A stretch of DNA of 64,000 nt, taken from the NCBI GenBank assembly GCA_016748015.1, contig JAAOMT010000602.1:1377696-1441695 (forward strand), in the 5' to 3' direction. Positions 18,549-64,000 of this stretch are shown here, piece by piece. This stretch comes from Geosiphon pyriformis uo1. Taxonomy: Eukaryota > Fungi > Glomeromycota. Under the pieces are notes generated by a model. It saw nothing but the letters and a program-made list of their open reading frames with translations. It made no database searches and was not told the origin of the DNA. Position numbers and translations under genes: made by a program. Every line of letters starts with the position of its first letter. Within the stretch, counting starts at the first letter, position 1.

Positions 18549-18589
<41 letters not shown>

Positions 18590-34296: not shown

Positions 34297-37200
34297 TGTA
34301 ATTATTATTGGTGAATAAGATTTGTTAGGTTTTCAAGCTAATGCTTTGATTCATGACCCAAGTTTCGGCCTCCTTTTTTATAGAAAGAAATTGTTTCAGA
34401 AAGCTGACTGCCCGGGCTGTTTACCACGAATCCCCTTTTTATCCGAAGTTTACTCCAAGTAACAAGCCTCACTGGCTAAAATCGTTATCTCAATGCAATA
34501 ATGATAATGAAAGATTTCCCGTAAATTCAACTTATCACTTATCGTATTTCTCAGTGTTGATCTTTGTTTGAGAAACAACATTAAGGTGATAAGGGAAAAT
34601 CTCAAGTTTCAGGTCAAACATGAGAGGAAAGGAAAGGAAAGGAATATTTAGAAATTTGATGGATCAATTCTTTCAAATAAGATTTTTTTTCTTTCTTTCT
34701 TTCTTTCTTTCTCAAATAAAATTTCTCAGGGGTTTTGATTAATAAGAAGAATGTCATATTAAATGTACAATATATTCTCCAATTAATTTTCCAGTTATCA
34801 CCATCCTTGAATATAATAGTTGCAATAAGCCTTGAAAAGAATTCTCATTTACTTAATGCACCGGTCCAAGTGCTTTGAGTTTATAAGAACATTAAATAAG
34901 CTTAATGAATAGATTTAAATATTTTTCAATTCTTGAAAGCTTCATTCAAAGCAAAACATTATTACACATGAAAATTAAATTCTTCCTATGCAGAAGCAGT
35001 ATTTTTGTATAATGTTCCACTAATAATTTCATTGAATTCTAGCGAATTTAAAATGAAAAAAAATTTAATAAAAAAATTTTTCTGCATATTCTGCCGTTTC
35101 TTTGTTTTCTCGCTTTTTTGTGCATCAGATGGAATCACAAATTAAAGCGAAAAAAAGTTATTTTTGCTGAACATATTGAATTCCCGAGTTTGATCATTTT
35201 TTGCACTTCGGGCTACTCCGAACCCTCTTCATCCAATAATTTCAATTATAAATGATACAAGATTTGGGTAACAGATGAATGAAGTACGAGTAACAAATTC
35301 ATTTTGAAAAGTTGCCGTTGATGTCTTCTTTTTCTTCCAAAAACGGGGATTATATAAAAATCATTTAGATGAAATATACATGCAGGGTTTTAGGTAAGTG
35401 TCTTATATACAAACTTTCTTTTGAGTAACTGTTGATCAATTATAACGTTGATGTGTATGTATCAAAGTGTATTTCCATTAAGTGATTTAAAAAATATTTA
35501 TACTAGTTAGCAGTAGTGAAATCGAATTCTAAAGAAATTTTTTCGTACACCAAATAGATTATCATCTTGATAAAATATTTAATTCAAGTCATCAACTTAA
35601 CACAAATATAGATACTAGTTAAAAAATGAATTTTAAAAATCTAAACTGATCACAAAACTTTTTATTTTTAAAGTTCAATCAAAAGTTAATCACAAATGCA
35701 AATTTATACTTTCTTTTAAGTTAAAATAAGGGGGGTGTAAATCAGAAATATAATTTGAAGTAGATTTACAACGACACAAGATCCATTTTTGTGCTCACAA
35801 TAGAATTAAGGTCAAAAACTATTTTTTTTTTTATATTCTTTTTTTTATATTCTTTATTATTCTTTCATTGTACCTTGAAATTTTTGACCTAATTAGTAAA
35901 ACAATCAGAGATTTAATAAGAGACAATTTCTAGATTGGTAAAATGAGGCATTGCAATTTTCTGGCTACAAATTCTGCCGCATTTGCACCGATATATATTT
36001 GTTTATGTATGTACAGGCACCAAAGTAACTGACAACTTTTTATATTCTTACACATGTAAATCGGGGGTTAATTTTGAGATTAAGCTATTTAAAATTGTAA
36101 AATAATCTTTTGATTTAGAGCAACTACAAAACAAATGTTCCACAATTCAAAAAAAAAAGTACTTCTTTATCTTGATTTGTTTAAGAAAAAGCTTTCTGGT
36201 ATATTATTTTAATTGAATAATTGCGATTGAGAAGTTAGCAAAAAATTTGATGTAAGCTTTTTAACAATATGTGGGTTCATATGCAATTATCTGTAAACTA
36301 GAGAAGATTCGAAACATTTTTATATATCAATTTTCTTGATTGAAAATTATTGCTTTTTTTTTTATAAATTATTTTTTGAAAACCTGTATTTTTTTAAATT
36401 TGAAATTTTTTATCAATATAAAATCATATTATTTAATTAACTTTATAATTTTTCAAGTTTATTAAAAATATTATATCATATTATTAAAGCAAGTTAAGCA
36501 AATTTTTTTTGCTGCATTGAAATTTTTATATAATAATATCAATTCACTTTGTTGTTTTTAGCTTTGACACTTATAATATATTAAAACCATTGGTTTCTCA
36601 TAAAAACATAAATTTATCTGTACTTTTCAAAACAATAAAAAAATGATGATTTAATTATTAAAAATTAGAATATTGAATCTTAATAAATTATTTTCATGTT
36701 TTTAAAAAAATTTATTTATATTTTTATTTTTAAATATAAAAAAAATTACCATATATTATTAATTTCAATGTCTTTTAAAAAGGAATTCTTTCTCAATTTT
36801 TGACATTTTATTTAAAATAATAATTTTTACTGTTTTTATTATTTGTTTCGCAAAATTAATAATATTTATTAAGCTATTATTTTAAACTTGAAAATAAATT
36901 TTATATATTACTTGAAATTTATTACATAAGTAATGAAAATATTTTATAGAATTGTTTATTTTTGAAATTTTTATTTTTTTCGTTTTAGAAAATTTTTAAA
37001 TACAAAAATAGTTACTTTTTATTACATTTTGCGAATTATTAATAATATTTTAAATTCATTTTTTATTATTTAGAAATTATATTAAATAAAAAATTTTAAT
37101 TATTAAATAATTAATTTTTTAATTTTCAAACAAAAATAAACTTTAAATTTTACATAATTAACAATTGACATAAATAAATAATTCATTTTATAAAAACATC

Positions 37201-38149
37201 TTAAATATAGTATCTTTGGCCAAATTAAATACATGATTAATAGTTAATTTATTTTTATTAATGTTCAAAGTTTTCAAAAAATAACAGTAATTGCTGTTTT
37301 AAAAAGTATTATTAGAAAAAAAGATACTCTTTTTTAGAAATTAAAATACAAAAAAGTAATTTGTGTTTTAATTTTTATAAACTATAATCAGTATAATACT
37401 AAAATATTAATTGTTTAATTCTTGTTTAATATAACTTTATGTGAATTTTCTAAATTAAAAACAAATTTATATTTAATTTAATTATTATTAACTGTTTGAT
37501 TTTGGTATAATATCATAAATTACTTAATTTTAATATTACTCGAGTATTAATAATATTAAAAAGATATTTATACTCCTTATTTTCAAGTTTAAATTATATT
37601 GGTATTATAATTTTTTTTTGGATTTTAATAATTAATTTCTAAAAATAATTTTAAATATTAATATATTAATTTTGATTACATATTTTATGTCTGATTTGTT
37701 TGTTCCTAATTATTGCTAATTTAAAAAAATATTAATAACTTATATTAATGTTTTTTAATATGTTTTTAATTTTTAGATTATAATATAATATAATATAATA
37801 TAACAAACTTATACCATAAACAAAAAAAACTAAAATATTTTCTGTAGTTTAAATGTAAATTTTTTTTTCTTTATTAAAATTTTTCATTGTGTATTATTCG
37901 CGTAAAAATGAAACTTATTATGTTTAACTTAAATTAGAAAAAATTTTTATTAAATTTTTTTATCGAAATTTTTTTTTGTAAATATTATAATAAACACTTT
38001 TTTTATCATATTCTTATTTATAAATTTTTATTAATTGAAATTTGAACAAAAACATCAATAAAGTATTTTAAATTTTTATTTATAATTTGATTTTTAATAA
38101 TTTACAAGCACAATCAAATGCAAAAATTAAATTATACAATATTTGAACT

Positions 38150-39350
38150 TTGTAACAATTAAAAATTTGTTAAAATTTAAGCATTTAATATATAATTCTC
38201 ACAACAAAAAAACAAGAAAACTTAATAAGTAATCTGTTGGTTTAAATTTTTCTGCTGCTTATTGAATATAAATATATTAAAAATTGGTAAAAAATTTAAA
38301 TCTAAGTTTTAAAAAAATAAATTAGTAGTTGTTATAATAATGTTAATAAGAATATAAATATTAATAATATAAAAAATATTTATAAAAAATTAGTTTTATT
38401 GTTAATAAAAGAATAAATGATTTTAAATCTATAAATAATATAATTTTATTTATATTTATTATGATAAATTAAATAATCTTATAAACAGTACTTTTAAGTA
38501 ATAAAAATAATATTTTTAATATTCTTTTTGTGCTTAATAAGAAATTAAACTTTATATTCTTGCCAAAAAAAAGTTTTAATTATTTAGTTTTTTGTATTAA
38601 ATATTAATTTTATAAAAATTATTAAAAAAATATTTCATTAAATAAATGATTTTAAAAAAAGTAGAAACTTTTTTAAAAATTTTTGAAATTATTAAATCTA
38701 CATTTATATATAAATTAAATTAAAATAGTTTAAAATTTGGTTATAAAGACAAATATTATTATTAATATTTAATCTAAAACATATAAATATAAAAGTAATT
38801 ATTAAGAAAATCCTAATTAATTTTTTTAAATTGGCTATAAAATTTGTTTTTGCTAAATTTAATAAGCTAATTTCAATTAAAATACTTATTAATTTGTATT
38901 AAAAAGTATAATAAAGTTTATTAATAATAAAATTATTAAGTTAATAGTTTTTAAATAGCTTATTTTTATAAATAATAATTTTATAAATATAATAAAGACT
39001 AATAAAAACAAAAATTTATGAATTTTTAAGAATTATTATTGAATATTTTTTTATATATTATTAATAAATACAATAGTTTAAAATTTTTCAATCTAATAAT
39101 TTTTATAATAAATATTAGTAATTTGGTTTTATATATTTATATTAAATATAAAATTATTTGTTTTAAAAATAAAACATCTTAAAAGATTGTATTTTATACT
39201 ATTCTAGTTTTTAATAATATAAATTTATATTAAATTAAATTATTTTTATTATTATATATAAAATATAAATAAGCTAAATATATATTTATTAAGTATAATT
39301 TAGATAAAAAAAGTTTTGGTTATATTAAAAAAAATGTTAATTTAATTGTT
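38150..39350 (+). mobile_element. Hypermutated LINE-like ORF1 relic (family A)
   Basis: Reads ...KKILINF-KLAIKFVFAKFNKLISIKI... around 38800-38885, restorable to KEIPVDLPKLAVEFVFAKFGKLISIKM (RRM-like). It resembles repetitive Geosiphon hypothetical proteins as I recall them. LINE assignment is inference. Confidence 0.5.
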
Positions 39351-39399
39351 AATTAATAATAATTAATACATATATATACTATAAAAATGGTTTTTATTG

Positions 39400-40350
39400 T
39401 TTATTTTATTATTTTTAATAGTAAAACTTGGATTTAAGTTATAATTAATATTTTTGCTAAATTTTTGTTTAATGCTTTTTTAAATATTAATTTATTTAAA
39501 AATAGTAGTTTTTTTATTAATATTGTTATTAGAAGTTTTTTTGCTTTTTTTTTAATGTTGTTAATGTTATTTTATTGTTATTTTATTGTTATTTCTATTG
39601 TTAATAAAACTTAGTAAACTTCTAATAAGCTAATTTTTTTTAAGTATTTTTTTATACTTTAAATTATATATGCTGTTAAATTTATGATAAAATAGCCAAT
39701 TTTATGCCAATTACTTGTGTAGTTATTTTGCAATAAAATCAATTTTTTTATATAAAAATTTCATTTGTAAGTTTTTTAAAATATATGTAGTTACTTTGTT
39801 ATAAAAGTTAATTTTTTTATAAGAAAATCTTGACAATAGACTATCCAGTAATATTATAATAAGAAAAATTTAAACTTTAAAGAAAAGAAAATAGAAAAAT
39901 ATGTATTATAAAGTTGTTTTAGATCTAAGCTTATAAGTACTAACATTTACTAAAATTAATAGCTAATTAATTTTAAGTTTGTTAATTTAAAAAATAAGTA
40001 ATTTCGAAATAATAATAGTTAAGAATTTTTAGTTTTCAGAATAATTTTATTTATATTAATTTATAGTTAATAATATTTAAAAATAAGCTTAATTTTGAGT
40101 AAAATATATTTTTTGAAAAAGAAGCTCTTTTTTTATAAAACTTGTTATAATATTATTTTATAATTTAGCATTTTTTTTAATATTTCGGCAAATTAATATA
40201 TATTTCATTAAACTACAAGTTATTTCTGCAAACTTATAAATTATTTTAGTAAACTGTTAAATATTTTATTGAACTTCTAAGTATTTTGGTAAATTTTAAA
40301 TATTATATAGTTTAGAATATTACATAATCTAATTATTACAATTTGGTTAT
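39400..40350 (-). mobile_element. Hypermutated retroelement coding relic (gag N-terminus-like)
   Basis: Minus strand gives a stop-riddled but codon-like frame (NLPKYLEVQ*NI*QFTK...), next to a 10-bp tandem array. Identity weak. Confidence 0.3.
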
Positions 40351-40560
40351 ATTTGTTTTTTATACAAATTAGATTATTAATTAAATAATAATTTGGTAAT
40401 TTAATAAAATAATAAGTGATAATTTAAAATAATATTATATACTAATTAATAATAAAAATTATAAAGATAATTTTATGCTATTACTTGAATAAAAAAATCA
40501 ATCCAAAATTATTAAAAAACATGATTATTATATGATAACATAAAAAAATATGATAATATA

Positions 40561-40640
40561 AAATAATACAAAATAATACAAAATAATGCTAAATAATATA
40601 AAACAATTCAGAATAATACAAAATAATACAAAATAATTAA
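40561..40640. repeat. 10-bp tandem repeat (AAATAATACA)x8, imperfect
   Basis: aaataataca aaataataca aaataatgct aaataatata aaacaattca gaataataca aaataataca aaataattaa. Confidence 0.85.
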
Positions 40641-41239
40641 TAATAACTAATTATAACATAAAAAAATAAAACAATAGCCAAAATAGTAAACAATAATTAA
40701 TAATAACAAACAATTGAAAACAATTATATAAAATTAGAAAATATGTATAAAAACAAATAGTTTAGCAAATAAAAAAAAACATATAAAAATCTAATTAATA
40801 TTTTTATTTTATTCTTAGTTTTAAAAATCTTTTTTATTTTTTATATTCCAACTTTACCAAATAAAATATTATTATTTAATTCATAAATCTATAATTTAAA
40901 ATATTTAATTGTCAAGATCTGATTAATTGTTTTTGTTTATCTTTGTTCCAGGCTAGATATAATTAGCATAAATGCTTTTAGAACTTTAATAACTTGGATC
41001 TATTGCTTTTAATTATAATGATTAATAAGATACTAATTTATTTTTTTATTTATTTATTTTTATTTTATTTTATTTTTTATTTTATTTTTTTTATTTTTTT
41101 ATTTTTATTTTTTTGTGAAATGAAATATTAAAAATAGATTTTATAATAGTTTAATAAAAAAAAAAAGCTCTTTTAGATTTAAATATTAATTTTATTTTGT
41201 TAACTTATTAAAAAAGTAAAAAACAATACTAAATTTTAG

Positions 41240-44230
41240 TAATTATGTTCAATTAACTCAAAAAAAACACAACTATAGCAATACACTTGAAAAAACAATA
41301 TTTTTGTGTCTTATAATAAAAAAACTTAATGGATAAAGTTTTAGACAAAAAAATCTTTAAAAACTGATAATCAATTTATTACCAAAATTAATTCATTCAA
41401 GAATAATCTGTTTTTAATATTACAATTTTACCAAGTTTATTTATAATATTTGATGCTTTTATGAAATTATAAAATTCATAAAAACAGAATATCCAGAAAA
41501 TTCATAAAGTAATAACTATTAGAATAGTTAAAAAAAATTATTTGTTTTTTAGAAAAGCATTATATTAACATTTTTGAAAAAATTTAAGAATCTCAAAAGA
41601 AATATTTGTAATTAAAAGTAACTTTCTTTATTATATATATGCCAAAATTGATTATGATTTAAACAAAACAGCTAATATTAAAAAACTTGAAAAGCAAATT
41701 TATTAAAATCTGTTATTAAATTAAAATATATACACAAAATTGTTATTTCTAATTTAAAAAAAATCACAACAAAAAAACTCTTTCCAAGAAATTTGAGTCA
41801 AATACTAAAAGCAATATTTAACAATAATTTAAGCAAAAAAACTATAATCTACTATTAATAAAAAGTCAAAGTTTCTATTATTAACAATATTATCATATTA
41901 CCAAATTTTAAAAAATAGAATATTACTTAATTAGTCTACTAAATTACAGCTTAAAATTCCAAAGACTTTTGGAAATTTCTGAACTAAATTATTGAAAAAA
42001 TATAAAATTTTATTTGAAAATTTTATTTTTGTAACAAATAATACTTTTTAAAACACTATTACTTAAAGATAACAAATATTATAATTACTAACTAAATCAA
42101 CAATTATTTTTTTTAAAAAAACAGCTCTATTTTAACTTTTTATAGCAATCAACAAAAAAAATAACCAATATTAAGTTCAATTAAACAATTAAACATACTA
42201 ATACCAATTTTTTCTTTGTTAATAAGTAAACAATCTTTTATTATTTCTGTTATAACATATAAAACCATTATTAAATTAAAAAAATTCTCAAGTATAAAAA
42301 AAATATTTATATTTAAATTATAAAAACTAAAAAAACAATTATGACAAATAATTAGAATAATAACAAAATAATTTAAGCCTTACTTTTTTTTAACTAAAAC
42401 AGCTAACTTATGATATTAAAGTTTCAATAAAAAATTAACTAACTTTGTTGTTTTTAAACTCATTTTTTTATAATATTTTTGTAACTTAAATACTCTAATT
42501 AGATTACAAAATTAATTTAGCATAATAAAACAAAAAAATTACAAAGCTATAATTATTTATCTTAGATAATTTAATAAGACTTTATACTAAATTCAAATTA
42601 TTAAATAAAATTATTATACATTTGGCCAAATTTTAAACCAATTTATAAAAAACCTAAGAAGCAATATTTTTTGGTTTGTTAAATTTTACTATCTTAAAAG
42701 TTTGTAAGATATTATAATACTTGTTTATAATTTTAAATTAATTTAATAAAAAGTCAACCATACCTAAACCATTAACTTAATTATAAATAGAATTTTTAAA
42801 ATTAACACAAAACTTATTTAATTAAATAAGAAGTTATTTCAAAAATTGAAAAATATTTTGTAAAAAGTTCAGAAATGTATTAACTTTTATAATATTAAAA
42901 AAATAACAATAATACAAAGTATTATTAATAGTAATTATGTTAATAACAACAACAGTTATAAAAACAAAATTTCTATAATTACTACTACTATTAAATATTG
43001 GTTATATTGTAAGAAATTATTGCCAAAAAATATCAGATCAAAATTGTAAAAACTAATATTAGCAATTAAATATTTACAAACAATAAAATATTAAACTTTT
43101 TTATTTTAGTATCTATAATTACAATACTTACTTCAATTACCACAGAATTATTACCAATATTTTTAAGTAATAATATAATTTTAATTTTAGTATTAAGCTT
43201 TATAATATAGCAATTCAAAATTTCAAGCCATTAACTATAATTAAAAATAATAAAGCAATAATAAAAATCAAATTTAATTTACAGTAGTATTTTTTCAAAA
43301 TTTAAATCATAAAAATTTATTATCTTAAACACTATTAACAGGCTATTTAAACTAAATTTTATATCTTGGTTTTATTAAAACTCAAAATTTTAATAATATT
43401 GAATCTTTAAAAAAAAAGCTATAGTTAAATTCACTAATTTTTTTCTTTTATCAACAATTAGACCATCTTTAATATAATTTTTTCAACTACAATTACCAAA
43501 AATAAAACTTTTATAGTCATATTTTTATTTAATATTAATAATTTAAATATTTATGATTTTTTAGTAAAATTGCTATTAATCTAAATAAAGTTATTATAAT
43601 AATATATACCAATATTCAAATAGAACAAATAAACATTAAATTAATACTCAACAGTAAATTAGTAAACAATATTATTATAAAATAAATTATAGACTAATTA
43701 AGTTATTAAATTAATTATATAGCCATTGTTAAAATTATTACTATTAATAAAAATACCAAGATTCCAATAAAAAAAATTTATAATTTCTTTTTTAAAATAA
43801 ATAAAATTTTAATCTTTACCAAAGTTTTTGTAATAAAAGCATTTAATATCAAGTTTTAGTTAATAATAAATGGTTAATTAAGACTTATGTTATTCTTAAT
43901 TGAAATATTCAAAAACTTTAAATTTTATTTAATGGCCAATACATTTAAGTACTTATTAATTATGACTATTTTAAGATAATTATTCTTAAATAGCCTTTAA
44001 TTAAATTTAAAAAATCTATAGTACAGCCTATTTTGAAGATATATTAAATTTCTTGGGCTAATAATTTTAGCATAAAGTTATTGTCATCAACCAATTAAAA
44101 AAAAAAGTTAAAGAAGAACTACAAGCTTTAATCTTTTTTTATATTTTATTGAATTAATATAATTAACTCTATTATTAACCAAAATTAATTTGTGTAAATT
44201 GTAAATCATGCTAATATATTATTTTAATTA
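41240..44230 (+). mobile_element. Hypermutated Ty3/Gypsy gag + aspartic protease relic
   Basis: Gag core at ~42390-42580 reads LTKTANL*Y*S...FKLIFL*YF...FSIIKQKNYKAIIIYLR*F, with stops TGA/TAA where W/Q/R are expected. Zinc knuckle at 42980-43020 reads YYYY*--GYIVRNY, i.e. CX2CX4HX4C after reversing transitions and one 1-nt deletion. Protease IKLILNSKL at 43635-43661 restores to IKLILDSGS (AAC AGT AAA from GAC AGT GGA). No RT or integrase recognised. Confidence 0.8.
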
Positions 44231-45760
44231 ATAATTAAGCATATTTAGTAAGTCAAAAAAATTGAAAATCTAAATACAAAATAAATTTTTGTTAGAAATA
44301 TTTTGTGTTTATTAATTTAAAATATATTTATCAAATTTTTAAATATAATTTCTGATCTTTGGTGTATTAATATAATTTTTTGAATAATGTAAATAATATT
44401 ATGTTTATTAAGATAATAATAAAAATTCTGTATAATAAGTTATTAAAAATTGGCTAAATAATAAAACTGTTAATTTGTTTAATATTACAAATAAATTATA
44501 AAAATATTGTAATAAATTTGTTTTAAATTTGCTATTAGATCTGTTAAATATATATTTAATAAGTAAATTAATTTTTTAATTATAGAAAAAAGTTTGAATA
44601 GTAATAATTTTTAAACTATATAATTAAAATAAAATATTATTTAATATTTGTTTTAATATATTAATTGAAAATAAAAAAAAAATTTAAAATTCATTTTAAC
44701 AGAATATTTTTATTCATAGCAAGTTTAATATTCTTTCTGATAATAATTTTTTAGTAATTCAATATATTTTAAATATTATTAGATAATCTTTTAAGATCAA
44801 TAAATAATAACAAAACTGTAATTATTTTAATTAATTAGAAAGTTATATATGTTTTTTTTTAAATATTAACAATTTATTATTTTTTATTGCAAAAATAAAA
44901 ATACATAGATATTTTGAAATTTTTTAATTTTTTAATTAACTAAAAGCATATTCAGATATAGTTTAAAAAAAATACATGTAAATATTAAAATTTTTTGTGA
45001 ATATAATTTTGAAAAAAACAATTTTTAATAAATAATTTCTTTATATAATATTAATAATATTAGTTTATTATAAAATACAATTTACTTAAAAACATTTCTT
45101 ATAAAACAGTACATTTTTTTTGTTGTACATTTTAAAATTTTTTAAATAGATTTAATTAAAAAAAAAGTTGTTAATATAATAAAATATGTAAATACTAATA
45201 ATAATTTTAACAGATTTTTTGATTATAAGATAGTAAATTTACATATTTTAACTAAAAAGTTATAACATCAATTCTAATTCTTTGTTAAACTATTTTTTAA
45301 TTTTTTAAACAATTTTTTGACTAGTGTAAAAATTATTTTTTTGGAATATAAAATTTTTTTATTTATAATATTTTTAATGTTTTTTATTTTAAAAATAAAG
45401 TTTTAATTTGAATGTTTTAACTTATTTAATCTATCATAAAATAGTTAAGTTTTTTTTAAAAATTTAGTATTGTTTTTGTTAATTAACTTTTTAATAGTTA
45501 TAATTTATGTTTCAATTAGAAAAACTTTTATTATTAAAAAAAATTTAATCTTAAAAGTTTAATTCCTGTTTAATTCAATTTGTTTTAATTTTTATCATAA
45601 AAAATAATTTTATTAATAATAACTTGATTTTATTATTTTCTATTTTTTATTAAAATTTTGTTGATTTTAAAGCTGTTAATAAAAGTTTAAAAATAACTTA
45701 TTTAGATATTGTTTTAATTTTTATAGATAATTCTATTAAAAAATTGGGTTTTTATAATAT

Positions 45761-46466
45761 TATTATGGTTAAATCTTTTACTTTTTAGCTTTTATTATTT
45801 ATTTAGCCATAATTAATTATAGGTATTAGTTATTAAAATTATTAAATTAGTTATTTTATTTTTAAAACTAATTATTAATGTAATTATTAACTTAATTAAT
45901 GACTTAATTATTGATTAAACGTTAATTTAATTATTGATTTGATTATTGCCTAATTATTAATATAATTATTAACCTAATTATTGATTTTTTTAAAAAAATA
46001 TAAAAATAAAAGCTTTTAAAAATATAAAAATAAGAACTTTTAAAAATATAAAAAAGCATTTACATTCAAATTATACTTAGATTAATACAAGAATATCAAT
46101 TTTTTTATTTTTTTTTATTATTTCTTTTATTTATTTTTCTTAATTTGTATAATTGTTAGTATTGTAAAGTATATTGAATAAATATTTATTAAAAAGTATA
46201 ATTAATATCTGATATTAAATTCTAAGAATGCTATATAAGACATAAAATTATACTAATATATTATTTTTTGTTAACAATATGGATTATTTAGATTTTTTTA
46301 TTATTTTTTAAAAATAATAATAATTAAAATATTTATGAACTAATCTTACATATTGAATTTTTATTACTTTAATTCACTTATTAAAGTTAAATTACTTTTT
46401 TAATTATTTTATCATTATACAATACTGTTTTTTTTGCTATAATAATATATTAATTTTTTTTATAAT
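45761..46466 (+). mobile_element. LTR copy 2 (heavily mutated)
   Basis: Colinear with 1085-1668, e.g. tgtattagccactgatgtcattatattagccaccct -> ggtattagttattaaaattattaaattagttatttt. Starts with the degenerate terminus TATTATGGTTAAA. Confidence 0.75.
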
Positions 46467-46679
46467 TATTATTAACTTAAATAATTAAGTTTTTTTTAAA
46501 TATATATATATCTAAATCAAATATTTTTAACTCTAATTTTTATAATTTTTTTGTTATGTATTTAACAAATATAATCTAACTATTATCTAAAAATTAGAAA
46601 CAAATTAAGTGTCTTAAAGCTAAATACAGTTTATATATTTTCTATTTGTAACTAGTTACTTAAATCAGTTCAGGCTATA

Positions 46680-49999: not shown

Positions 50000-50580
50000 A
50001 TTTTAAGTAAATTTTAATAAAATACACTAAATTAAATTTAAATTTAAAAATTGGCTGTAAACAATAATTTTCTTTTTATTGTAATAATAATATAACAATA
50101 TATCTATTAAAATTGGTTTTAATTAATACATAATTAAATTATATAATATATTAAATTTTAGTTAATTATTACCAGTTTTAAAACAAAAATAAATTATGTT
50201 TTTATATATAAATTTGCTTAATTATTTAATTTTAAAAATTAAAGCTTTTTTTTCTCTAAAAACACTATTAATTTTAATAATATTTAAAAAATAATTACAA
50301 CTTGTTAAAAAACTTTTAAATAAAAAATCTTTATTTTAATATTTAATAAAACTATAAAACTTAAGTTGGCTAATATTAAAACTGTTTTTTAGTTTTTATA
50401 TGGTTTTATTGGTTTGAAATTGGTTATTAAAAACAATTTTAAACTTTTTGAATAAATTTTGCATTTAAATCTTTTTTAAATACTGCTATTTAAATTATAT
50501 TTGTTAATTTTTTTCTTATTATTTTTAAAATTATAAAATTTTCTGTAATATTTGATTTTTGTTTTTGCTTTTTTTAAGTA
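50000..50580 (+). mobile_element. Second fragment of ORF1 family B, inverted relative to 46680-48720
   Basis: 50354-50449 IKLKLANIKTVF*FLYGFIGLKLVIKNNFKLF aligns with minus-strand ~48057-47960 FKIK*VYIKTVF*FIYNFLSIKLVSKNNIKLF. Shared DNA ATTAA(A/G)ACTGTTTTTTAGTTT. Confidence 0.65.
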
Positions 50581-53789: not shown

Positions 53790-54500
53790 TTAATTCACTT
53801 TGCTCAGCTCAAAATTTTTCTGAAGAATAAATTGTATGATGATGAGTACACTTTTCAATTAATCCCACCAAATATTCACGGAGACCTTCATTTTCCTCCA
53901 TTCTATATTACAATAACCGACACTACTATGGTTTTCAATAAAAAGGTTTTACTTTCTGCATTTTTGAATTCTCCTTAATAAATTTCCTTGGTGTAAAGGA
54001 TTGAACCACTTAATTCTTTGTTATCCTTGCATTTAGCAGTTAAAGCAAGAACTTCTCAATCTTTTCTTATAAATATTCTATAATTAATTGAAAGTGATTT
54101 TGCTTCAATAATCAAAAAGAAAGTAAAAAAATCATACAATATTGAGAATAATATTATGAAAGAAAGAAATTACTCTGCCAATTTTTAGTTACCTACTTCT
54201 CCAATATTTTTCACTTCATAAACCTAAAAAATTGAATTATAATTCAAATAGGTAAATTTAAATTTGAAAATAATCATTCATCAAAACCATTTTGTCAACA
54301 TTTGTGGTTGCTATTATTGCTATTGCCATTAGTATTTGGATCAAGAAATAGTACTACTTTTTTAAGGTAAAAAGATGGATTTAAAAAAAGACTTGCTTTA
54401 AGAATATTTATAGTAAAATTACTAACATCTGGATGAGTGATAGTATGTAAATTTGCAGGTTTTGTTTTTGCATAAGTATTTAATTTCAGGCAAACATTTT
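53790..54500 (-). pseudogene. Partly mutated spliced-gene remnant, unknown family
   Basis: Exon-like pieces with AG/GT borders (e.g. ag|VYEVKNIGEVGN*KLA|gt at ~54223-54174) and in-frame stops. GC falls toward the AT block. Confidence 0.3.
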
Positions 54501-54712
54501 TGTTATAAAGCCTTTATAAATTAGTATTTAGCACCAATTTTTGTTATAAAGCTCCTATAAATTAGTGTTTAGTGTTAATTTAAATCTTAAACATTAAATC
54601 GTTCCAAAAATTTCTTTCTTTTTTTGTTATAAAGCCCTTATAATTAGTATTTAATATCAATTTAAATCTCTAATAGTAAATTATTTCAAGAAATTTCTTC
54701 TTTTTTTTGTTA
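54500..54712. repeat. Imperfect tandem repeat (40-bp core TGTTATAAAGCC(C/T)TATAAATTAGTATTTAG, ~83-bp longer unit)
   Basis: Three copies starting at ~54501, 54542 and 54625, differing mostly by transitions. Confidence 0.8.
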
Positions 54713-54797
54713 TTAATATTATTTTAATTATTATTTTTGTTGTTATAAAAATAATTCTTTACTCTTTTTTTTTTTAGTTTTTAAAAATGTTAATTCT

Positions 54798-54909
54798 AAT
54801 ATTATTACTATTATTATTACTATTATTACTTTTATTATTACTTTGCTATTATTATTACTATTGTTATTTTTATTATTATTATTATTATTACTATTATTAT
54901 TATTATTAC
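54798..54909. repeat. Degenerate (TTA/CTA)n trinucleotide tract
   Basis: Direct observation; source of the poly-Asn ORF 54743-54925. Confidence 0.85.
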
Positions 54910-56589
54910 CAAATAATAAAAACAACTTTTTAAGCTCTTTTTAAAATTAACAAGTTGTAAAATAATCTTAAAAATTGTGATTAGTTATTATAATTGGCAC
55001 TTTTGTTTCAATTTTTTTTAACATATTTTGTTTTTTAATTTTGAAAATTTATAATTTATATTAACAAATTAACTTTTAGTAAATATAAATTGGTTAAAAA
55101 TATTTTTGTCATAATATAATTGAAAACATAGAACTTAAAAAGCACAAAAAATAATAATAAAAATTTATAACAAATACCAAAAAACAAAAAATATACATTA
55201 TTAATTAAAATATATTTAAAAAAACTTTTAAAACAATAAATAAAATTAATTAAATTTGTTTTTAATACAGTAGTAAATAAAACTAAAAATGTTAAATTAA
55301 AAAAGAAATTGATTAAAACTTTTTAATAAAAACAACTTCTTTTTAATAATAATTTCACTATATAAGATAAAAAAAGCTTTATAGAACATGTTTTTATAAA
55401 ATTGTTTAGATTTAATTCTTGTTAACCACACAAAATAAAGTTATTAAATATAATATATAATAACAACAAAATACATTAATATATTAATTTTAGTAAATTT
55501 TTTTTGGAATTATTTTTTGTTACTTTTTTTAATATTTATATTAATACAAATTTATTTTTAGTTTAAATATTAATAAATAGTTATTGTAATTATATAAATA
55601 AAAAAACAAATTTGTTTAATTTGTATAAATAAGTTTATTTATGTGGTTTTTATTAATTTTAGTATTTATTTATATTTTTTATATGTATTTTTTTACTAAA
55701 AACTAAGTAAAATTAGTTAATATAATATAAAATATATTATTTTTATCTCTATTTATATAAACAAATTAATATAATAATTTCTAAATACAAAAAAAGTTAA
55801 AAAAACTTAATAGAACAATAATATAAATACAATAAAAAATTAAATATCTGCAAAATAAAATTCACAAAAAAACAATTTCTTTTTTTATTTATAAATTTAA
55901 TAATATTATTATTTTACTATTTAAAATATCTAATATAATAAATTAAAAATCATAAAAATTACATAAAATTCAGTTTGAAAAATTCTTGATTAAATATATT
56001 ATCAATTTTAAAAAAATTAAAAATTTATATTATACTTTAAAATAAAACTTATATATAATTAATATAAAAAAATTTAAAACATTAAAAAATTTACAATATA
56101 TATTATAAAATTATAATAAATAAAAATGAAAATAATACTCAAAAAATTTTATTTTAAGTATTATTTAATAAAATTTTAATTTTATAAAGATTATATAAAA
56201 AATAATAATATGTATTGTTTTTTATTAATATATAATACAAATATTTTAAAAATATTTAATACTTTAAAATATAAAAATTCTATAAATAAAAACATAATAA
56301 TAATAATAAATACATTATTAAATAATTTTTAATAAAATTTAAAAACTAATATATTTTTATAAAAAATGTTTTAAAATTTTATTATATAATTAAATTTTTT
56401 TGTAAATAATTTAAATAGGAATTAATAATAAACAAAATAAATTTTTAGTATTTAAAAAAACATTTTTAATTGGCTAAATTTTATATATAATTATATATAT
56501 TTAATAAAAATATATTAATATATTATTTTTTTAGTAAAATTTTATTCTAAATTATTCTTAAACTAATTAAGTTTTAATATTAATTTATA

Positions 56590-58520
56590 TAATTAAACTT
56601 CTATAAAACACTATTTAGAATTTAACAATATTATTTATATTTTTTAATAGCAAAAACAATAGGTTTATCTAAAAAAATTTGTTTATAAGTACCTATATAT
56701 TAAGTAAATTAATATATTTAATAACAAATATTAACAAAACTAATAAATTTTAATACTAATAAAATAATTGTTTTAAGATTTTTAAACAAATAATTACAAT
56801 AAAAATGTGTATATTATTTTGTTTTATTTCAAAATATGTTAATAAAATTAAGTTTACAATAAAACTTTAAATAAAAATACACATATATTTAATTATTTTA
56901 ATAATTTTTTGTAAATAGTTTTTTTGAAAAGTAAAATTAAGTTAATAGCCAAGAATTTTATTTGCATAACATTAAAAATTTATTAAATTAAAAGCATAAA
57001 ATTTGCAAATACTATATTATTTTGTCAAACTTTTTAATTACAAGTTATATACTTTTTAAATTTATTTAATATCTTTATTTTATTATAATATTAATATTAA
57101 TAAATATTAAATTATATAAAAATTCATTGGATATTTTGTTATTGTAAAGTAATAATTACTTATTACTGTTTTTTAAAATTATTTGTAAACTATAAAAATA
57201 TTTTTAACATAAATTTTGTAATTATAACTGTTATTAAATATATAGAATACAATTTTTCCTAAGTGTATTTTTTCAAAAACCAAATAGTTTTGTTAACTAT
57301 TTGGTTTATAAAATTTTGCTTAGTTTATTAATTATTTTAATTAAAGTTTAAATATATAATAATCCAAATTTTAACATACAAAATTCAATTATTTTTAAAA
57401 AGCAAATTATTAACATAAATATTAAGCATCTGTAATTTGTATTAAGTCTGATTTTTTTCTGTTAAACTTTAAATATTAATAATTCTATTGTTTAAAAACA
57501 TTTAATAAAAGTATTGACACAATAATTTGGTCTATATTCTGTTTTTTATATATTATAATCTGAAATTATAAACTGGTTATTTATTATAAATTCATTTTAA
57601 TAAACCACATTTTTATGTTTATAATCATTAAAGTAAATGTTCTTTAAATAATTTTTATAATTTAACTAAAATAATATAGCCATTTCTGAGCTGTTTTTTT
57701 AGCAATCGTTTTTTATGTTTCAATTTCAAGAAAAGAAATAACTTTGTTCTTAATAAACTTAATAAATTGTTAAATAGTTATGATAAATTTGTTTATATGC
57801 AAATATTAGGTAACACACAGCTTGAAATCTTTATTAAGTAAAAGTAACTTAATTTTGGAATGTTAACCACTACATAATGTAATTATTTTGAACATTGTTT
57901 GGTCTATAAACAAATAATTTGTTCATGCTATGAACTCTAATTAACACCACAAACAAGAATGTTACTAGCAGAAAGCTTAGAAAACCCTTGATCTTGAATG
58001 AGATAAACGAATTAACTCATTATTTGAAGCCACACATTGGAGTTTTTCTTTTGAAAGATGCCAAAGTGAACAAATTATTCTCTTTATTACTTGATTCAAT
58101 GGTCTCAAATGGGAGTTCATAATTACTGAAAGCATTATTGATAAGAAACCAGTTTGTAATTTTGCTGGAACCCAAAGCTGCTTTTCTCCAGGCCGCTCTT
58201 TTATTACAAAGTGTTGATTCAGCAAAACCCATATAAATTGACTTTCATTCTTTTACCACCTACACATCAGATTGTCTGGCGTTCTTTATGAGTTTTTCCA
58301 ATGCATCTGCTTGTACTCTTCCCAATTCTTCTATAAATTGGTCGTTACTCAAAGGCTCGTTTTTATTTTCCATCCAAGTAGTATCAAAGCTTAGTTGGTT
58401 GTCCTTTTGGTTATTATTTGGTTGATTCCCCGGTACTCGATAACTTAGGGTTTGATTTCGTATTGTTCCAACACTTTTTTGCAGTTGCTGAGCAGTGTTT
58501 ACTTTGCTTCTTTCGTTTCG
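56590..58520 (-). mobile_element. Tc1/IS630-superfamily DDE transposase pseudogene with a mutation gradient
   Basis: The 5' part reads almost cleanly (YMGFAESTLCNKRAAWRKAALGSSKITNWF). Downstream: KTIAKKTAQKWL; NIYFNDYKHKNV at 57641-57606 (from NIYFDGHEREDV); FNNS at 57238-57227 (from FDNS); YLKFYCKLNFINIF* at ~56873-56829 (from YPKFHCELNFIE/DxxW); KKYK*YC (from KKYKxHR). Confidence 0.85.
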
Positions 58521-58655
58521 GTATAATAAAAAATGTGCAATCTAAAAGGATCTTAAATAAAAAAAATGTACTTTCAATGGAAACAACGGGTTTTTAATTA
58601 TAAAAAAAACACTTTAAACCAACAAACATTTCATTTTTGCTTTTTTTTGAAAAAA

Positions 58656-58805
58656 ACGCGTTCTGAAATTCTAGAGTATATTGTGGAGAGAACAGGGTTA
58701 TTAGGCAACAGCCTTCCAGACACGCTCTTTTATAGAAAAGGGAAAGCCTGAGAGTCTCTTAAATAACTTTAAAAGTCACTCTTAAGATATGAACGCGTAA
58801 CGCGT
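58656..58805. promoter_or_regulatory. Cluster of three ACGCGT (MCB-like) boxes upstream of the DDE transposase
   Basis: ACGCGT at 58656, 58793 and 58800; the last two form the near-palindrome AACGCGTAACGCGTT. Function unproven. Confidence 0.3.
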
Positions 58806-58999
58806 TTCATTTGCAGATGATTTATTATATAGTAATCATGTGGTTTATTATTTTATTAATAAACCACTTTCCCAATATACTACGTAATACATGCATCGAG
58901 AATTTCAGCGGTGGTGCAATATTTGATATTACAAACCATCCGGAGATATGTAATAAAAGTTTTCACCTATAACTTTATTGTTGAAAAACAAATATCTAC

Positions 59000-59630
59000 T
59001 AATGGGTCGAGTCAATAATTAAAGAATTGTCTCTAAAGCAATTAAATCCCATTCAATAAAGACTGTCTCCTTCAAGTTAGCTTCTGTTCGTGGCTTTTGG
59101 TTCTGGTGAACCCAATTTTTTAACTTCCTTCTACAAAGATCTGGCGATTGTGGAGACCATTCCAAAGTCAAAAACTCTAGGTTTATCTTGGAGTTCTTTC
59201 ACACGCTTGCACTTATGAATTGGAGTGTTCCTGGAATATTGCCTCTTTGATAGTCATAATCATTGGTTTCCATATACTTCACCAGTCATACGTGAGGAAT
59301 ACATCTATACTATGATGGTTTTACATCCACTTTTAACGGTTGCTCATGTATGACCAGGGTTATGAAAGCTCACTTTTATGACGCCATACACGAAAATCTC
59401 CACAAGGATCGGTGCTTATGGGGGACTCGTCTGTCCAAAGAACGCGTCGCCAATCCTCCTTGATCCAAAGCTTGTAGGGTTTTGCCAATTTAGCGGTTTG
59501 ATTCGGTCACTTCATTGATCATTGGTTTCTTACATGTTTTTTTTCGGAGTTTTCATAAAAGTTGTAATGGACGTAGGAGTTTGGATTTTAGATGAGATTT
59601 CGCTAGTAAGCAGATGTTTTGACATCTTAT
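59000..59630 (-). mobile_element. Tc1-type transposase relic, decayed by indels and not hypermutated
   Basis: WIKEDWRRVLWTDESP (~59467-59420), RVWR, TVKSG, NTPIHK, LEWSPQSPDL (59165-59136); NPIE deleted; CpGs retained. Confidence 0.8.
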
Positions 59631-60144
59631 TTTTTAATTCCCAGAAAATTTGAGTTCAGAATGTTATAAATATTAGATTTTCGACCACTATTAATTCTTT
59701 TGAATTAATCAGTATTTTTTGTTAATTCTAATCGTGTTAACAACTTTTAACACAAGTAGTGGACCGTCCAATAATACGTGCAATTTTTACCCTTTATCTT
59801 GAGAATCTTTACATTCATTTTTGCTAAGATCTTTTTGGCGACCCATTTGTGTATACATTTCGAATTTTCAAGTCGCTCTTTAGTTAAATAATAAATTAAA
59901 CAAAGACGATGTCTTTTTGTTATTAAAAATAATGCAGATGCAATTTTAAGGTTGTTAGTATTACTGCAATCTTTTGAAATTCATTACTGTCTTGAGAAAA
60001 TCGTCCTAATTTTGTGTCACCCGTCTGTACTTGTTCTTACAATAATCTTTTTATAGTTATTGCGGATTTCACCGGATATAATCAATAAAAAGCAGGTTTA
60101 AATAGTTATCGCAGTTTTCACCTCATAGCCAATCAACGTAGATT

Positions 60145-60925
60145 TCACCCTGTCATATTATACTTTTCACGACTGAAATTGGGATCTTGGATAAAAGCAG
60201 AAAGCACCTTACTCCCAGTTTGCAAAAGAGGATGACCTGCGACACTATAAATCAAATCAAACAAAAGTGAAAATAGTCCAACATAAAATAAACCTTACTA
60301 AAAACTTAGAGATCAGGCCCATGCTACTCACATTTGCAAAAACCTTTCAAGTCCTTCACGGCGGGCTTCAATCACCTCATCAGTAAAGCGATTAGTGAAG
60401 ACTTTTCCAGGTAAAGGGGGAATGTTCACTCTCGAGGATTCCCTTTCAAGAACATCTCGAAACCACTCAAAATCACTATATCGCCTTCTGACTTTAGAAT
60501 GTGTAAGTTTGAATGCAGGGATATTGGTCTGAAGAGAAAGCAAAACAAAAATGATTGAATCGATTTGAAAAACGAATTTTTTGATAATTCAGACTTCATG
60601 ATAGAACAAATCTTCGCTGACTTTTCATAAGAGTTAAATTCACAGAACCCAACACTATGATCTCTACTCACTGTACAAACGATTTCATAATCTGTAAACA
60701 TCTTGCGTCCAAAACCTTTACGTTACAAGGTATTGGAATTTATTAGCGTTCCGGAAGCACCGTCAATGAGCCGTTCAAAAGTGAAAAAATACCATGCGTC
60801 TGCGGATTTCGAATTTCAATTTCAAGTGAGTTTTCTGGTATTCCATACATTTCGTCAGGGGTTTGTTCTTTCATTGTTAGCCGAGAAGTTGCGTCAAAAT
60901 TTTTCTGGGTAGGAGAAGAAGCCAT
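60145..60925 (-). CDS. SNX3: Sorting nexin-3 (PX domain; Snx3/Grd19) (exons 60925-60793, 60715-60672, 60528-60332, 60244-60145; 157 aa)
   Basis: Spliced product ...[122 protein letters not shown]; 474 nt in frame. Confidence 0.96.
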
Positions 60926-61249
60926 TTTAGAAGTTAGAAAAGGGAATGTAAGGTGAGCTGCACATTCAAAAAGAAAGATTTGGAATATCTATTTTTTCGG
61001 GAGGTTAAACGTTTACGAAATTCAAGGAGTTCTAGAAACATGACAAACGTTACCAAATCGATAAGGATTTAGCTTTGATTCGCTGAAAGGGAAAACGTCG
61101 ACACATCGTTGCATGATCTTTTGATATCCAAATTAATTGGTCACAGATGCTGCGACAACATTAGATCACATGAGCTCAAAATGGCTGGTGTGGCTGAGAA
61201 ATTAACTAATATAACTGATAATGCTTTTGTTTTAAAGCACATGTTTGAA

Positions 61250-64000
61250 TCCATAATAAACATAACATAAACTTTTACTATAAGAGTACATTTATATAAA
61301 AATATAAATATGAAACTAATTTACATTAAATCTATATAAAACCTAAAAATTACAAATATTTTTTAAAAAAAAAACAAAATAAAAATATTATATTTTATGT
61401 TTTTAAAATAAAATTCTTTACAATATTTAAATAAAAAAATTACTTATAAAAAATTAAACAAAAATAAATCAGATAAGTATAATTAATTTTAATATATTAA
61501 AATAGATTTTTTAACAAAAAACATATAATATTTTAATATCAAATATTTTTTATTAATATGTATTTTTTTAAAATAATTAATATTTATTATTTTTTTATTT
61601 ATTGCTTTTAATTATATTATTAAAAATATATTTTGTTTAGATCTAATAAAAGCTTAAAAATTTGACAATTTTTTATATATAAGCAATTATATATTATTTT
61701 TATTAAATATAATTAATTGTTTTCTTGTAAAAAATATTTAAAAAATATTTATATTTTATTTTTGGTTTTTATTTAAAATTTTTTAATTTTGATAATATTA
61801 ATATTATTTATATGTTGATTTAAAAGTTTTTTACAATTTTTGATTATAGTTATTATATATAGAATAATAAAATATTACAATATATTTTAAAAATATATAC
61901 ATAAAAACTATTTACATATAATATATATTCTTTAAAAAAAATTTGTTTATAAAATATGAATTTATATATTATATTTTAATAAAAATTTAAACTGTGTTTT
62001 TATTTTACAAATAATTTATTACAAAATTTTAAATTTTTTTATTTTTAATATTTATTAATTAATTATTACAGTTTTATTATTGTAAAAAGTAAAATTAATA
62101 ATTAAATTCAAAAAATTCACTTATTTAATAATAATTAATTTAAATAAATTATTATGTATTATATTAAAATTTTATATTATTATATAATTAAATAATTTTT
62201 TTTGTTATTTTGTTTTTTTGGTCTTTATATTTTGTTTTTTGTATTTTTATTTTTTATTACTATAGTTTTATTTATTATTTAATCATTTTATTAATTTTAT
62301 TTTTTTTAACTTTAATATTTTATAATAAAATTTAAATTATTAATTAATATAAAATTATTTTTATAATTTTTATTATTAATTAACTACTTTATTTTTAAAA
62401 TTAGTTATTAATATAATTATTAATATGATTATTAATTTAATTATTAATCTTTTTTTAAGAATATATAAATAAGATTTTTTAAAGTCATAAAAAAAGTATT
62501 TATATTCAAATTATACTTAAATTAATACAATAATATTAATCTTTTTATTTTTCTTTTATTATTTTTTTTTAATTTGTATAATTGTTAATTTTTTTAAAGT
62601 ATATTAAATAAAATTTTACAATTAATACTTTATATTAAATTTTAAGAATACTAATATAAAGCATAAAATTATATTAATATATTATCTTTTTTACTTTCAG
62701 ATTTTTTTGTTATTTTTTAAAAAAAATAGCAACTAAGATATTTATAAAACTGATTTTATATATTAAATTCTTATTAATTCAATTTATTTATTAAAATTAA
62801 ATTATTTTTTTAATTATTTTATTATTATATAATTGTTTTTTCTTGTTATCTATTAACTTGTTAATTTAATTATAACATAAAAATAATGTTTTTTATAAGA
62901 TTGTTAAAATTTTTAAATCATTTTTTATTATATGAATGATTATTTTTTTATAGTATAAAAAATTCAAAATTATTTTATAATATATAATTAAAACAATTTA
63001 GCTTATATTAAACTTAATTTTCTTTTATCTTGTTTTATTTGTTTCTTAGTTAAAAAATAATTTAACTAAAAATTTCAATTGATTTTTAATTGAATATTCA
63101 GCCAAAACTTAATTTATATATATTTTTTACTTTTTTAATCAAGCATATTTTAAAGAAAAATTTAAAACAAAAAACAATTATATTAACTAATTAATATTTT
63201 CAGTTATTTTTAGTCAATTTTTTTTAAATTTAATAATTTAAATTAGCAAATCTATAATTAAATATTTATTTATTTAATATTCTTAGAAACTAAAAAAAAA
63301 ACTTATTAAACAGTATTTTTGAATTTTTTTCAAATAATTTAGACTTTTTATTCTAAATACTAACTTTTATTATAACATAAATTAAAGTACATGATAAAAC
63401 AAACATATTACTAGTATTTTAAAACATCTAAATTATTGAAATATAAGTTTTTTATCTTTATTTTAAAAAAAAATTTAAAATTTTATAGAATGATTTAAGA
63501 CCTTTAAAAAAGTTACTATAACAAATCAATCTAACAATAATTACAAGTTTTAAATAATTAAAAAATTTTTTCAAGAATTTTTTACTGCATAATTTACTTA
63601 AAAAACTGTTAAAAAAGCTGTTCAATAAATTATTTAATAGTTTTTTAAGAATATTAGCCAAAATACAATCTTTTTTACTATATAATTTGAAAAAATTTTC
63701 ATATTATACTTAAATAAAAAATAAAATTAAAAAAAAGAATACAAAACTCAAAAAAAGTGGTCATAGAATATGTTAAAGCAATTTAGAAATTAATAAAGCA
63801 TATAAATTTAGAAAAAAACTAAATAGAAAAATAAAAAATTTAAAAACAGATCTTTTTTATGCTTTATGATTTCTTTTTACTATTAAAAATAATTTTATTT
63901 TTAACTCAATAATAGAAATAGTTTAAAAAATAGAAAATCATGTTTTTTTTAAATAATTGCTTTTGTTTTTATTTTTTTTGTTAATTGACCAAAACAATAT
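61250..64000. other. Hypermutated AT-rich block (runs off the window)
   Basis: Abrupt loss of G/C and CpG ~300 bp upstream of the SNX3 start. Contains LTR copy 3 and a minus-strand coding relic (63458-63661). Confidence 0.8.
62258..62877 (+). mobile_element. LTR copy 3 (most heavily mutated)
   Basis: GAGTGCCGATGTGAG (1450-1464) -> GAATACTAATATAAA (62646-62660). Ends TTTAATTATAACA versus TCTGACCGTAATA in copy 1. 5' boundary approximate. Confidence 0.75.

Follow-up and report, generated by a model that had tools for sequence, protein, structure and literature searches.

Among the systems in which transposons are inactivated by C-to-T change, one of the closest to the case described here is the repeat-induced point mutation (RIP) of the Pezizomycotina, which is RID/DIM-2-dependent in Neurospora crassa. 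RIP converts C:G to T:A on both strands of repeats under a CpA (3') rule and with few transversions, leaving irreversibly inactivated transposons in sharp-edged AT-rich blocks beside intact genes. A RIP-like hypermutation of TpCpG is found in the Pucciniomycotina (Microbotryum). Transposons also undergo methylation-driven C>T decay, as in the CpG decay of vertebrates and in the GC-poor methylated retroelements of plants such as Welwitschia. In the AID/APOBEC deaminases it is the 5' base that sets the preference (TC or CC), and DddA-type deaminases act on double-stranded DNA. To our knowledge, repeat-directed C-to-T hypermutation has been regarded as an invention of the Dikarya, essentially of ascomycetes, tied to RID and to sex. 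The subject of this analysis is a stretch of 64,000 nucleotides (contig JAAOMT010000602.1; hereafter the window, numbered from its first letter as position 1) from Geosiphon pyriformis, a glomeromycete (Archaeosporales) and not an ascomycete. Here, C:G>T:A change that is directional, on both strands and restricted to repeated DNA has built blocks of very low guanine-plus-cytosine (GC) content.

Full-text literature searches found RIP-like signatures reported neither for Geosiphon nor for Glomeromycotina. RIP signatures went undetected in Gigaspora margarita and in Mucoromycotina (Dallaire et al., PMC8647823), a 2025 transposon survey of mycorrhizal fungi leaves RIP unmentioned, and a 2026 review gives RID as ascomycete-only. 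The published G. pyriformis assembly comprises 129 Mb in 795 scaffolds (PMC9453076), and the assembly used here 128.3 Mb in 792 contigs, with a mean GC of 29%. About 300 kb of the 128-Mb genome was examined, and the family-level conclusions come from a handful of families.

The window has a GC content of 28% over its first 36 kb, with genes at 32–40%. From 36.3 kb on, three AT blocks of 13%, 11% and 10% GC are separated by GC-normal islands of 28–35% that hold host genes, and the GC of 300-bp windows is bimodal, with modes at about 0.12 and 0.27. A sequence-only reading of this DNA had proposed three AT-rich blocks between 36.3 and 64.0 kb with untouched host genes nearby, and both statements hold: the blocks stand at 10–13% GC against a background of 28%, and the intact PX-domain exon of a host gene lies only about 0.8 kb from block 3. 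These features, with the observed/expected ratio (O/E) of the dinucleotides where computed, are as follows:

36300–51200: AT block 1, 13% GC, CpG O/E 0.18, GpC O/E 2.26, a mosaic of hypermutated repeat relics.
54500–57800: AT block 2, 11% GC, CpG O/E 0.11, GpC O/E 1.95.
57800–61200: GC-normal island, 35% GC, CpG O/E 0.90, which contains a host gene and fragments of dead transposons.
60331–60543, minus strand: intact PX-domain exon of an SNX3-like host gene (PF00787, E 5.7e-19).
61300–64000: AT block 3, 10% GC and zero CpG, with a high-copy repeat relic at 62230–63940.

Within the blocks the CpG O/E is 0–0.18, GpC is in excess (O/E about 2.0–2.6) and TpC/GpA is low (0.4–0.86), while CpA, at 1.04–1.15, is not depleted.

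The direction of change was established by pairwise comparison with natural GC-normal copies, from private changes and by per-column tallies. Copies that differ strongly in GC were aligned in a transition-blind manner, in which purines and pyrimidines are recoded to one letter each (R/Y) before BLAST against the fetched loci. Two repeat families of block 1 enter the comparison, family 2 being the case with the best polarisation:

46450–49170: family 2 relic, 17–22% GC, 6,218 first-look candidates in the genome at 72–80% identity.
40480–44206, plus strand: family 1 relic, a retrotransposon of 15% GC, recognised from its copies and from R/Y homology to two GC-normal elements (L061 and L064).

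The family 2 copy of the window (47333–48831, 18% GC) is 95.4% identical in R/Y code, over 1,502 bp, to a copy of 41% GC (L039:2584-4085). Relative to that copy, 196 of 300 C have become T and 184 of 316 G have become A (65% and 58% of the sites, respectively), against 20 T>C, 24 A>G and 79 transversions. The ratio of C:G>T:A to its reverse is 380 to 44, or 8.6:1, and three further AT-rich copies of the family show the same spectrum. The earlier proposals that both C>T and G>A occur on the same strand with few transversions, and that a targeted, overwhelmingly directional hypermutation of transposons builds the AT blocks in a fungus outside the Dikarya, are upheld.

The same spectrum is seen at a much earlier stage in a young family, a GC-normal (42% GC) high-copy retroelement with an RNase H open reading frame (ORF). 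Pairs of its copies differing by 10% are separated by 136–143 transitions and 1–3 transversions. Among the private changes of 10 copies, 104 are C>T, 51 G>A, 12 A>G, 8 T>C and 8 transversions, so that C:G>T:A accounts for 155 of the 183 and transitions outnumber transversions by 175 to 8. The per-site rates on the two strands are nearly equal (C>T 0.377, G>A 0.347).

At the opposite end of the process, family 1 was scored at columns with at least 13 letters among 18 copies. Polarisation by singletons is invalid for this family, in which most copies carry the mutated state. Its invariant columns comprise 649 A, 360 T, 3 C and 0 G, and its variable columns 655 C/T and 504 A/G, the share of copies holding C or G being spread from 0.1 to 0.9. 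Each copy retains 29–39% of the C sites and 25–29% of the G sites, evenly along its length. All 18 copies have 15–17.5% GC, which could be taken to mean that such elements are natively AT-rich, as could the fact that the AT/GC boundary of one element recurs at the same position in several copies. However, almost any C or G found in one copy is replaced by T or A in others, at frequencies spread over a broad spectrum, and GC-normal copies of the same families exist; an assembly or contaminant artefact, for its part, is countered by the contiguity of the blocks with nuclear genes and their homology to nuclear elements. Native AT-richness or an artefact is thus the least credible of the explanations considered.

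Editing of retroelement complementary DNA (cDNA) by an APOBEC-like deaminase during retrotransposition would account for a preference set by the 5' base (TC, CC; see below) and for the fact that the identified targets are mainly retroelements. Such editing is strand-asymmetric, in contrast to the equal per-site rates found here on the two strands. In addition, 60–75% of G:C sites have been lost, one element has been mutated in situ over only part of its length, and the genome yielded five housekeeping-type CDA-fold loci only, with no match to APOBEC_N, NAD1, OTT_1508, DddA-like or YwqJ models. This explanation is accordingly given hardly any weight.

When the genome was searched with block sequence, first-look candidates ran into the thousands, at 3,579–6,218 per family, and the scored copies, at 70–81% identity, numbered dozens. 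The top-scoring copies of the block repeats are all 15–20% GC themselves. Besides families 1 and 2, the following relics were delimited:

39516–40480: family 3 relic, of a high-copy family of about 1 kb, with 5,626 first-look candidates and dozens of copies at 76–81% identity.
44439–45584: relic akin to L062, a GC-normal element that has an RNase H ORF, with an R/Y identity of 83–84% over 259–314 bp.
50266–50571, minus strand: partial inverted copy of family 2, found by repeat search and R/Y alignment.
62230–63940: block-3 repeat, with 3,579 first-look candidates at 71–79% identity.

Within the family 1 relic, 42252–42941 is R/Y-homologous to a GC-normal element (L061) across an ORF with the Pfam domain Retrotrans_gag, and 43460–44063 to an element with a dUTPase ORF (L064). 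The latter (G000:C702:500001-505000) is a GC-normal retroelement with the dUTPase domain in a 441-aa ORF, and a distant relative of family 1. Beyond the family 1 relic, 44448–45058 matches the L062 element, whose ORF is recognised as RNase_H with an E value of 1.9e-12. By these homologies, at least the region from 40.5 to 45.6 kb of block 1 is retrotransposon-derived. The gag relic claimed by the sequence-only reading is thereby recovered at 42252–42941; at 36.3–38.0 kb, the repeat matches in the genome search are only short and weak, and a transposon origin was not borne out there. Its two CCHC knuckles could not be recovered either, since a relaxed scan (C/Y..C/Y....H/Y....C/Y) gave no convincing relic, and its DSG protease and DDE transposase motifs found no Pfam match on the pieces tried (window pieces and GC-normal flanks, which gave no DDE transposase hit). 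A direct Pfam scan of stop-free pieces of AT-rich copies, at most 119 aa long at 10% GC, gave no match, and an ESM Atlas search with the family 2 ORF was uninformative. Searching block 1 for internal repeats found only chance low-complexity pairs. At the 5' end of the family 1 relic, 40536–40672 consists of about 13 tandem copies of a 10-bp unit. The left edge of block 2 (54743–54925) is a low-complexity run of AAT/ATT-type triplets that translates as poly-Asn/poly-Tyr.

Repeats of the same genome that do not show this regime serve as internal controls. One of them lies in the GC-normal island between blocks 2 and 3:

58940–59900, minus strand: dead mariner-like fragment, GC-normal, compared in 5 copies.

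This fragment, whose mariner-like C-terminal motif at 59019–59171 was recognised by eye only, and its four relatives are 73–81% identical and have 30–36% GC; transitions exceed transversions 1.4-fold, and C or G is invariant in 90 columns. Likewise, a linked inverted gene duplicate of 1.15 kb at about 90% identity differs by 50 transitions and 22 transversions, which is an ordinary spectrum. These sequences bear on neutral decay, that is, on old junk drifting towards an AT-rich mutational equilibrium, for which it can be said that the genome is AT-rich as a whole (29% GC) and that C>T outnumbers every other change in the control family, too. Yet the mariner-like copies, with transversions of 6.5–12.7% per pair against 5.5% in family 1, have kept their normal GC, the copies of the young family have diverged by 10% almost without transversions, and GC in the window is bimodal. 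In the two targeted families with light damage, C:G>T:A amounts to 0.037 and 0.082 per G:C site per copy and transversions to 0.0007 and 0.0025 per site, compared with 0.087 and 0.037 in the mariner-like control, so that after normalising by transversions the targeted regime is 15–20 times faster. From the rates of forward and reverse transitions, the targeted families are calculated to settle at 8% and 14% GC and the control at about 29%, values that match the two GC modes. Since both the mariner-like control and the gene duplicate are ordinary, neutral decay is rejected, and we consider it very improbable; the earlier proposal that the spectrum is peculiar to the targeted DNA stands up against these dead GC-normal fragments and the duplicate. 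Like cDNA editing, native AT-richness and artefact, neutral decay was thus rejected as a main explanation.

The same controls indicate that duplication alone does not seem sufficient as a trigger, as far as two cases (the gene duplicate and the mariner-like family) can tell. Copy number is not the criterion either, since a family of about 6 copies has been hit and one with about 20 copies listed has not.

A true RIP-like defence would sense homology and change C to T through a DNMT-like or other enzyme with a site preference unlike that of Neurospora, and it might be linked to a cryptic stage of sex or nuclear fusion. Much of the pattern looks as RIP would leave it: the mutation is confined to repeats, affects both strands, is nearly free of transversions and ends sharply beside intact genes. 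The heavily hit families have pairwise identities of 70–80%, about where RIP loses homology recognition. However, the untouched 1.15-kb duplicate (90% identity) and multi-copy mariner-like family, together with the family of only about 6 copies that was hit, argue against such a defence, and the dynamics of the damage do so as well. C>T per G:C site divided by transversions per site is about 50, 33 and 38 at G:C losses of 3.7%, 8.2% and about 62%, respectively, so that damage is proportional to transversions across a 20-fold range. In lightly mutated copies, neighbouring changes of the same type (C>T or G>A) number 77 where 78.5 ± 5.1 are expected, and a second group has 106, with 97.9 expected; this neighbour test in two groups thus revealed no strand-polarised tracts, which sets these copies apart from those of Neurospora RIP. 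Furthermore, some blocks have gone down to 5–8% GC, which is the predicted equilibrium and means that no stop was made at a homology threshold; damage here scales with age until compositional equilibrium is reached. Among four family 2 copies the mutated sites largely differ, with some excess of all-or-none sites. The pattern looks like many independent single hits over time in resident copies, rather than processive bursts that stop at a homology threshold.

The edges of the blocks are abrupt where elements of unlike state abut, GC falling for instance from 33% to 3% in one 60-bp step, and from 48% to 5% within about 200 bp at block 3. GC-normal retroelement ORFs of 444–512 aa directly adjoin islands of 7–10% GC. 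The edge between block 2 and the neighbouring island is of a different kind, as it falls inside one element:

56527–58100: low-copy element, hypermutated in its left 1.3 kb and not at its right end, compared with a copy of 25% GC (L025).

As far as about 57800, it differs from that copy by 197 C:G>T:A and 51 reverse changes, and beyond this point change is symmetric. Within 57.3–58.2 kb its GC climbs from 10% to 45% over about 500 bp. Mutation over part of an element's length could mean that only the part shared with a duplicate was hit, as RIP would do. The GC-normal right end has counterparts of 7–10% GC elsewhere (L043, L032). The sequences on either side of this element, 56230–56466 and 58543–58928, adjoin each other in other copies (C681, C303, C274, C199, C385, C549), and the element of 56.5–58.5 kb is therefore a nested insertion into an older one. 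In the copies where the two are joined, the left part is AT-rich and the right part GC-normal, with the boundary recurring at the same position.

The sequence context of the mutated cytosines is set by the 5' neighbour. In family 2, the polarised data give a mutated fraction of 0.75 for C following T, 0.71 following C, 0.53 following A and 0.52 following G, while loss by the 3' base is 0.62 before A, 0.64 before C and 0.63 before T, and 0.75 before G (n=44). Writing Y for pyrimidine and R for purine, 0.73 of YpC and 0.54 of RpC sites are mutated in the window copy (p=1.7e-6), and each of the four family 2 copies gives 0.70–0.76 against 0.49–0.56, with p from 1e-6 to 1e-9. Family 1 has retained C at 0.21–0.22 of the sites following Y, 0.39 of those following R and 0.19 of those preceding G, RCA being best retained, and the private changes of the young family affect 0.48 of YpC against 0.28 of RpC. 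This 5'-pyrimidine preference accounts for the excess of GpC in the blocks and for their deficit of TpC/GpA. It runs opposite to the rule for CpA in Neurospora: CpA is not favoured, and the three 3' bases other than G are without effect (0.62–0.64). On the other hand, the classical Margolin indices place the blocks on the RIP side, with TpA/ApT at 1.04–1.09 and (CpA+TpG)/(ApC+GpT) at 0.84–0.98, against 0.78 and 1.37 in the background, which is a further point for a RIP-like defence; the stricter thresholds of current RIP software would presumably not be met by these blocks.

The TpCpG hypermutation of the Pucciniomycotina shares with this pattern a non-ascomycete host, retroelements as targets and a mutation favoured by a 5' T and a 3' G, and TCG sites have here been lost completely (8 of 8 in family 2, 2 of 2 in the young family). 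Nevertheless, TCG makes up only 8 of the 2,372 scored site-copies of family 2. CpG is a small minority of the targets in Geosiphon, where non-CpG YpC carries most of the damage and GC has fallen from about 41% to 10–18%.

A cytosine preceded by a pyrimidine is also the context of C>T changes of the ultraviolet type. It has thus to be considered that dipyrimidine photoproducts at YpC, or other lesions, are followed by deamination in the compacted, methylated and poorly repaired chromatin of a light-exposed soil-surface fungus, with no dedicated enzyme. The cumulative, unclustered appearance of the process and the CpG depletion of the affected sequences, which fits an effect of chromatin state, are in line with this. 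The preference, however, is only about 1.7-fold, with half of the RpC sites lost too, and a 15–40-fold difference in rate across boundaries of 60–200 bp is larger and sharper than known repair heterogeneity; damage of this kind is therefore regarded as improbable.

The depletion of CpG just mentioned is the trace that cytosine methylation in the germline would leave. In the targeted families, GC-normal members have a CpG O/E of 0.07–0.37, against 0.79–1.0 in genes, in the island at 58.0–61.2 kb with its dead fragments and in the mariner-like copies (0.79–0.99 for the latter), and the CpG O/E is bimodal among GC-normal 1-kb windows. This putative methylation footprint is the best correlate of targeting that was found. 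The depletion is specific to the affected sequences and the genome encodes DNMT1-class loci, both as expected of methylation decay in plants and animals, to which the pattern is also similar in being cumulative, in apparently following a silenced or methylated state, in affecting CpG first and in acting on both strands. It goes far beyond such decay in that 60–75% of G:C has been lost, non-CpG change is dominant, a 5' pyrimidine is preferred and the genome is bimodal.

In the gene searches, exons were queried individually. A PF00145 profile search of the genome gave ten matches, sorted by domains and relatives, without a phylogeny including RID, and no RID/Masc1-like gene was recognised among them. 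Three are DNMT1-class loci with RFD and/or BAH domains (C371:419691-423692; L002 C702:1326028-1329426; L006 C666:679525-682761), and two are DNMT2-like. On C702 and C666 the pieces are set apart by stops or changes of frame, for which introns or decay may account. In addition, a catalytic-only C5 methyltransferase is present in two linked inverted copies 32 kb apart (L001 G000:C657:786780-790151 and L005 C657:819213-822836). It is 99% identical to KAG9301204.1 (G9A89_012587, Geosiphon pyriformis, 540 aa), its sole close relative is found in Ambispora leptoticha (56% identity), and its next relatives are methylases of bacterial/cyanobacterial type, many with tandem methylase domains. On the strength of these relatives, it may be an Archaeosporales-specific horizontal acquisition; an ESM Atlas search with a small methylase exon returned bacterial fragments only and was uninformative. 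As for deaminases, six Pfam models were run, and no genome match was found to APOBEC_N, NAD1, OTT_1508, DddA-like or YwqJ (PF08210, PF18778, PF14441, PF14428, PF14431), i.e. no AID/APOBEC-like deaminase, although divergent families could escape these models. Of the candidate enzymes named in the sequence-only reading, DNMT1-class loci were found, and neither a RID/Masc1-like gene nor an AID/APOBEC-like deaminase was recognised. That the PF00145 matches are DNMT1-class, DNMT2-like and bacterial-type, with none recognised as RID/Masc1-like, is a further argument against a RIP-like defence, which is considered unlikely overall. RIP in the mechanistic sense is the part of the sequence-only reading that finds no support, and its hint at meiosis or cryptic sex finds none either. 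As for the mechanism, there is no CpA bias, the preference is for a 5' pyrimidine, the tracts are not polarised, some duplicates are spared, and no RID-like gene was recognised in this glomeromycete host.

The outcome is nevertheless RIP-like, in that transposons are irreversibly inactivated and AT isochores are built beside intact genes, while the mechanism is probably not RIP. The favoured explanation, to which a probability of about 0.5 is assigned, is a cumulative cytosine deamination aimed at methylated or silenced transposons in the nuclear genome. According to this model, transposon copies, largely retrotransposon-derived, would enter a special mutational regime after insertion. On both strands of the resident double-stranded copy, C would be converted to T 30–50 times faster per site than transversions accumulate, with a modest preference for C after a pyrimidine and for CpG, and the process would continue until the equilibrium of the regime is reached at about 8–14% GC. 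Only a marked subset would be affected, a subset that is CpG-depleted even while GC-normal. The direction of change, its symmetry between the strands, its context, its selectivity, its proportionality to transversions and the association with CpG depletion are themselves observed. The mark is proposed to be transposon silencing (DNA methylation and/or heterochromatin) rather than bare duplication, and the chemistry a deamination of modified or enzyme-engaged cytosine, with damage presumably accruing by many independent single hits and not by processive bursts.

Several points weigh against this explanation. CpG depletion is a proxy for methylation, and could be just the fastest context of the same process; moreover, CpG-type maintenance methylation alone does not account for non-CpG C>T, and the genome profile searches found no non-CpG methyltransferase or DNA deaminase. 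The spared cases are few, namely a single DNA-transposon family and a single gene duplicate; misalignment inflates the transversion counts where the aligned sequences have 10–15% GC; strand polarity could likewise be erased by light RIP repeated over many rounds; and what has been seen is about 300 kb of 128 Mb. Finally, a preference for the 5' base is typical of AID/APOBEC- or DddA-type deaminases and not of methyltransferases, and therefore points to a further enzyme; in these deaminases, as here, the 5' base of the target C sets the preference. A more specific and distinctly tentative proposal can be made: the Glomeromycotina, or at least the Archaeosporales, might possess a dedicated defence enzyme system, unrelated to RID and possibly of bacterial origin, that deaminates resident double-stranded transposon DNA with a 5'-YC preference, an independent counterpart of RIP that would have brought about one fifth of the genome to its present 5–17% GC.

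Beyond the window, AT islands are present in most of about 45 fetched loci and in 2 of 6 samples of 5 kb taken at fixed coordinates. From the 29% GC mean and the two modes, it can be roughly estimated that some one fifth of the genome lies in AT blocks. Small AT islands also occur inside the gene-rich first 36 kb of the window, at 6901–7800 (17% GC) and 17901–18900 (14% GC). The same region holds a single-copy ORF of 736 aa (21193–23403, 40% GC) with no Pfam match, whose exact sequence is absent from the protein collection searched.

In the literature on arbuscular mycorrhizal fungi, RIP signatures have been called absent from the relatives of these fungi; in Geosiphon, a selective, near-saturating C>T regime is now found. 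An AT-isochore-building inactivation of transposons thus exists in the Glomeromycotina, with a different signature, and RIP indices based on CpA would under-call it, which may explain why it has been missed. The process bears on the containment of transposons in repeat-rich, supposedly asexual fungi, on the abundance of unclassifiable AT-rich families in their repeat libraries, and on the way the genomes of mycorrhizal fungi are compartmentalised. Should the process be enzymatic, the underlying cytosine deaminase activity on double-stranded DNA would also be of practical interest.

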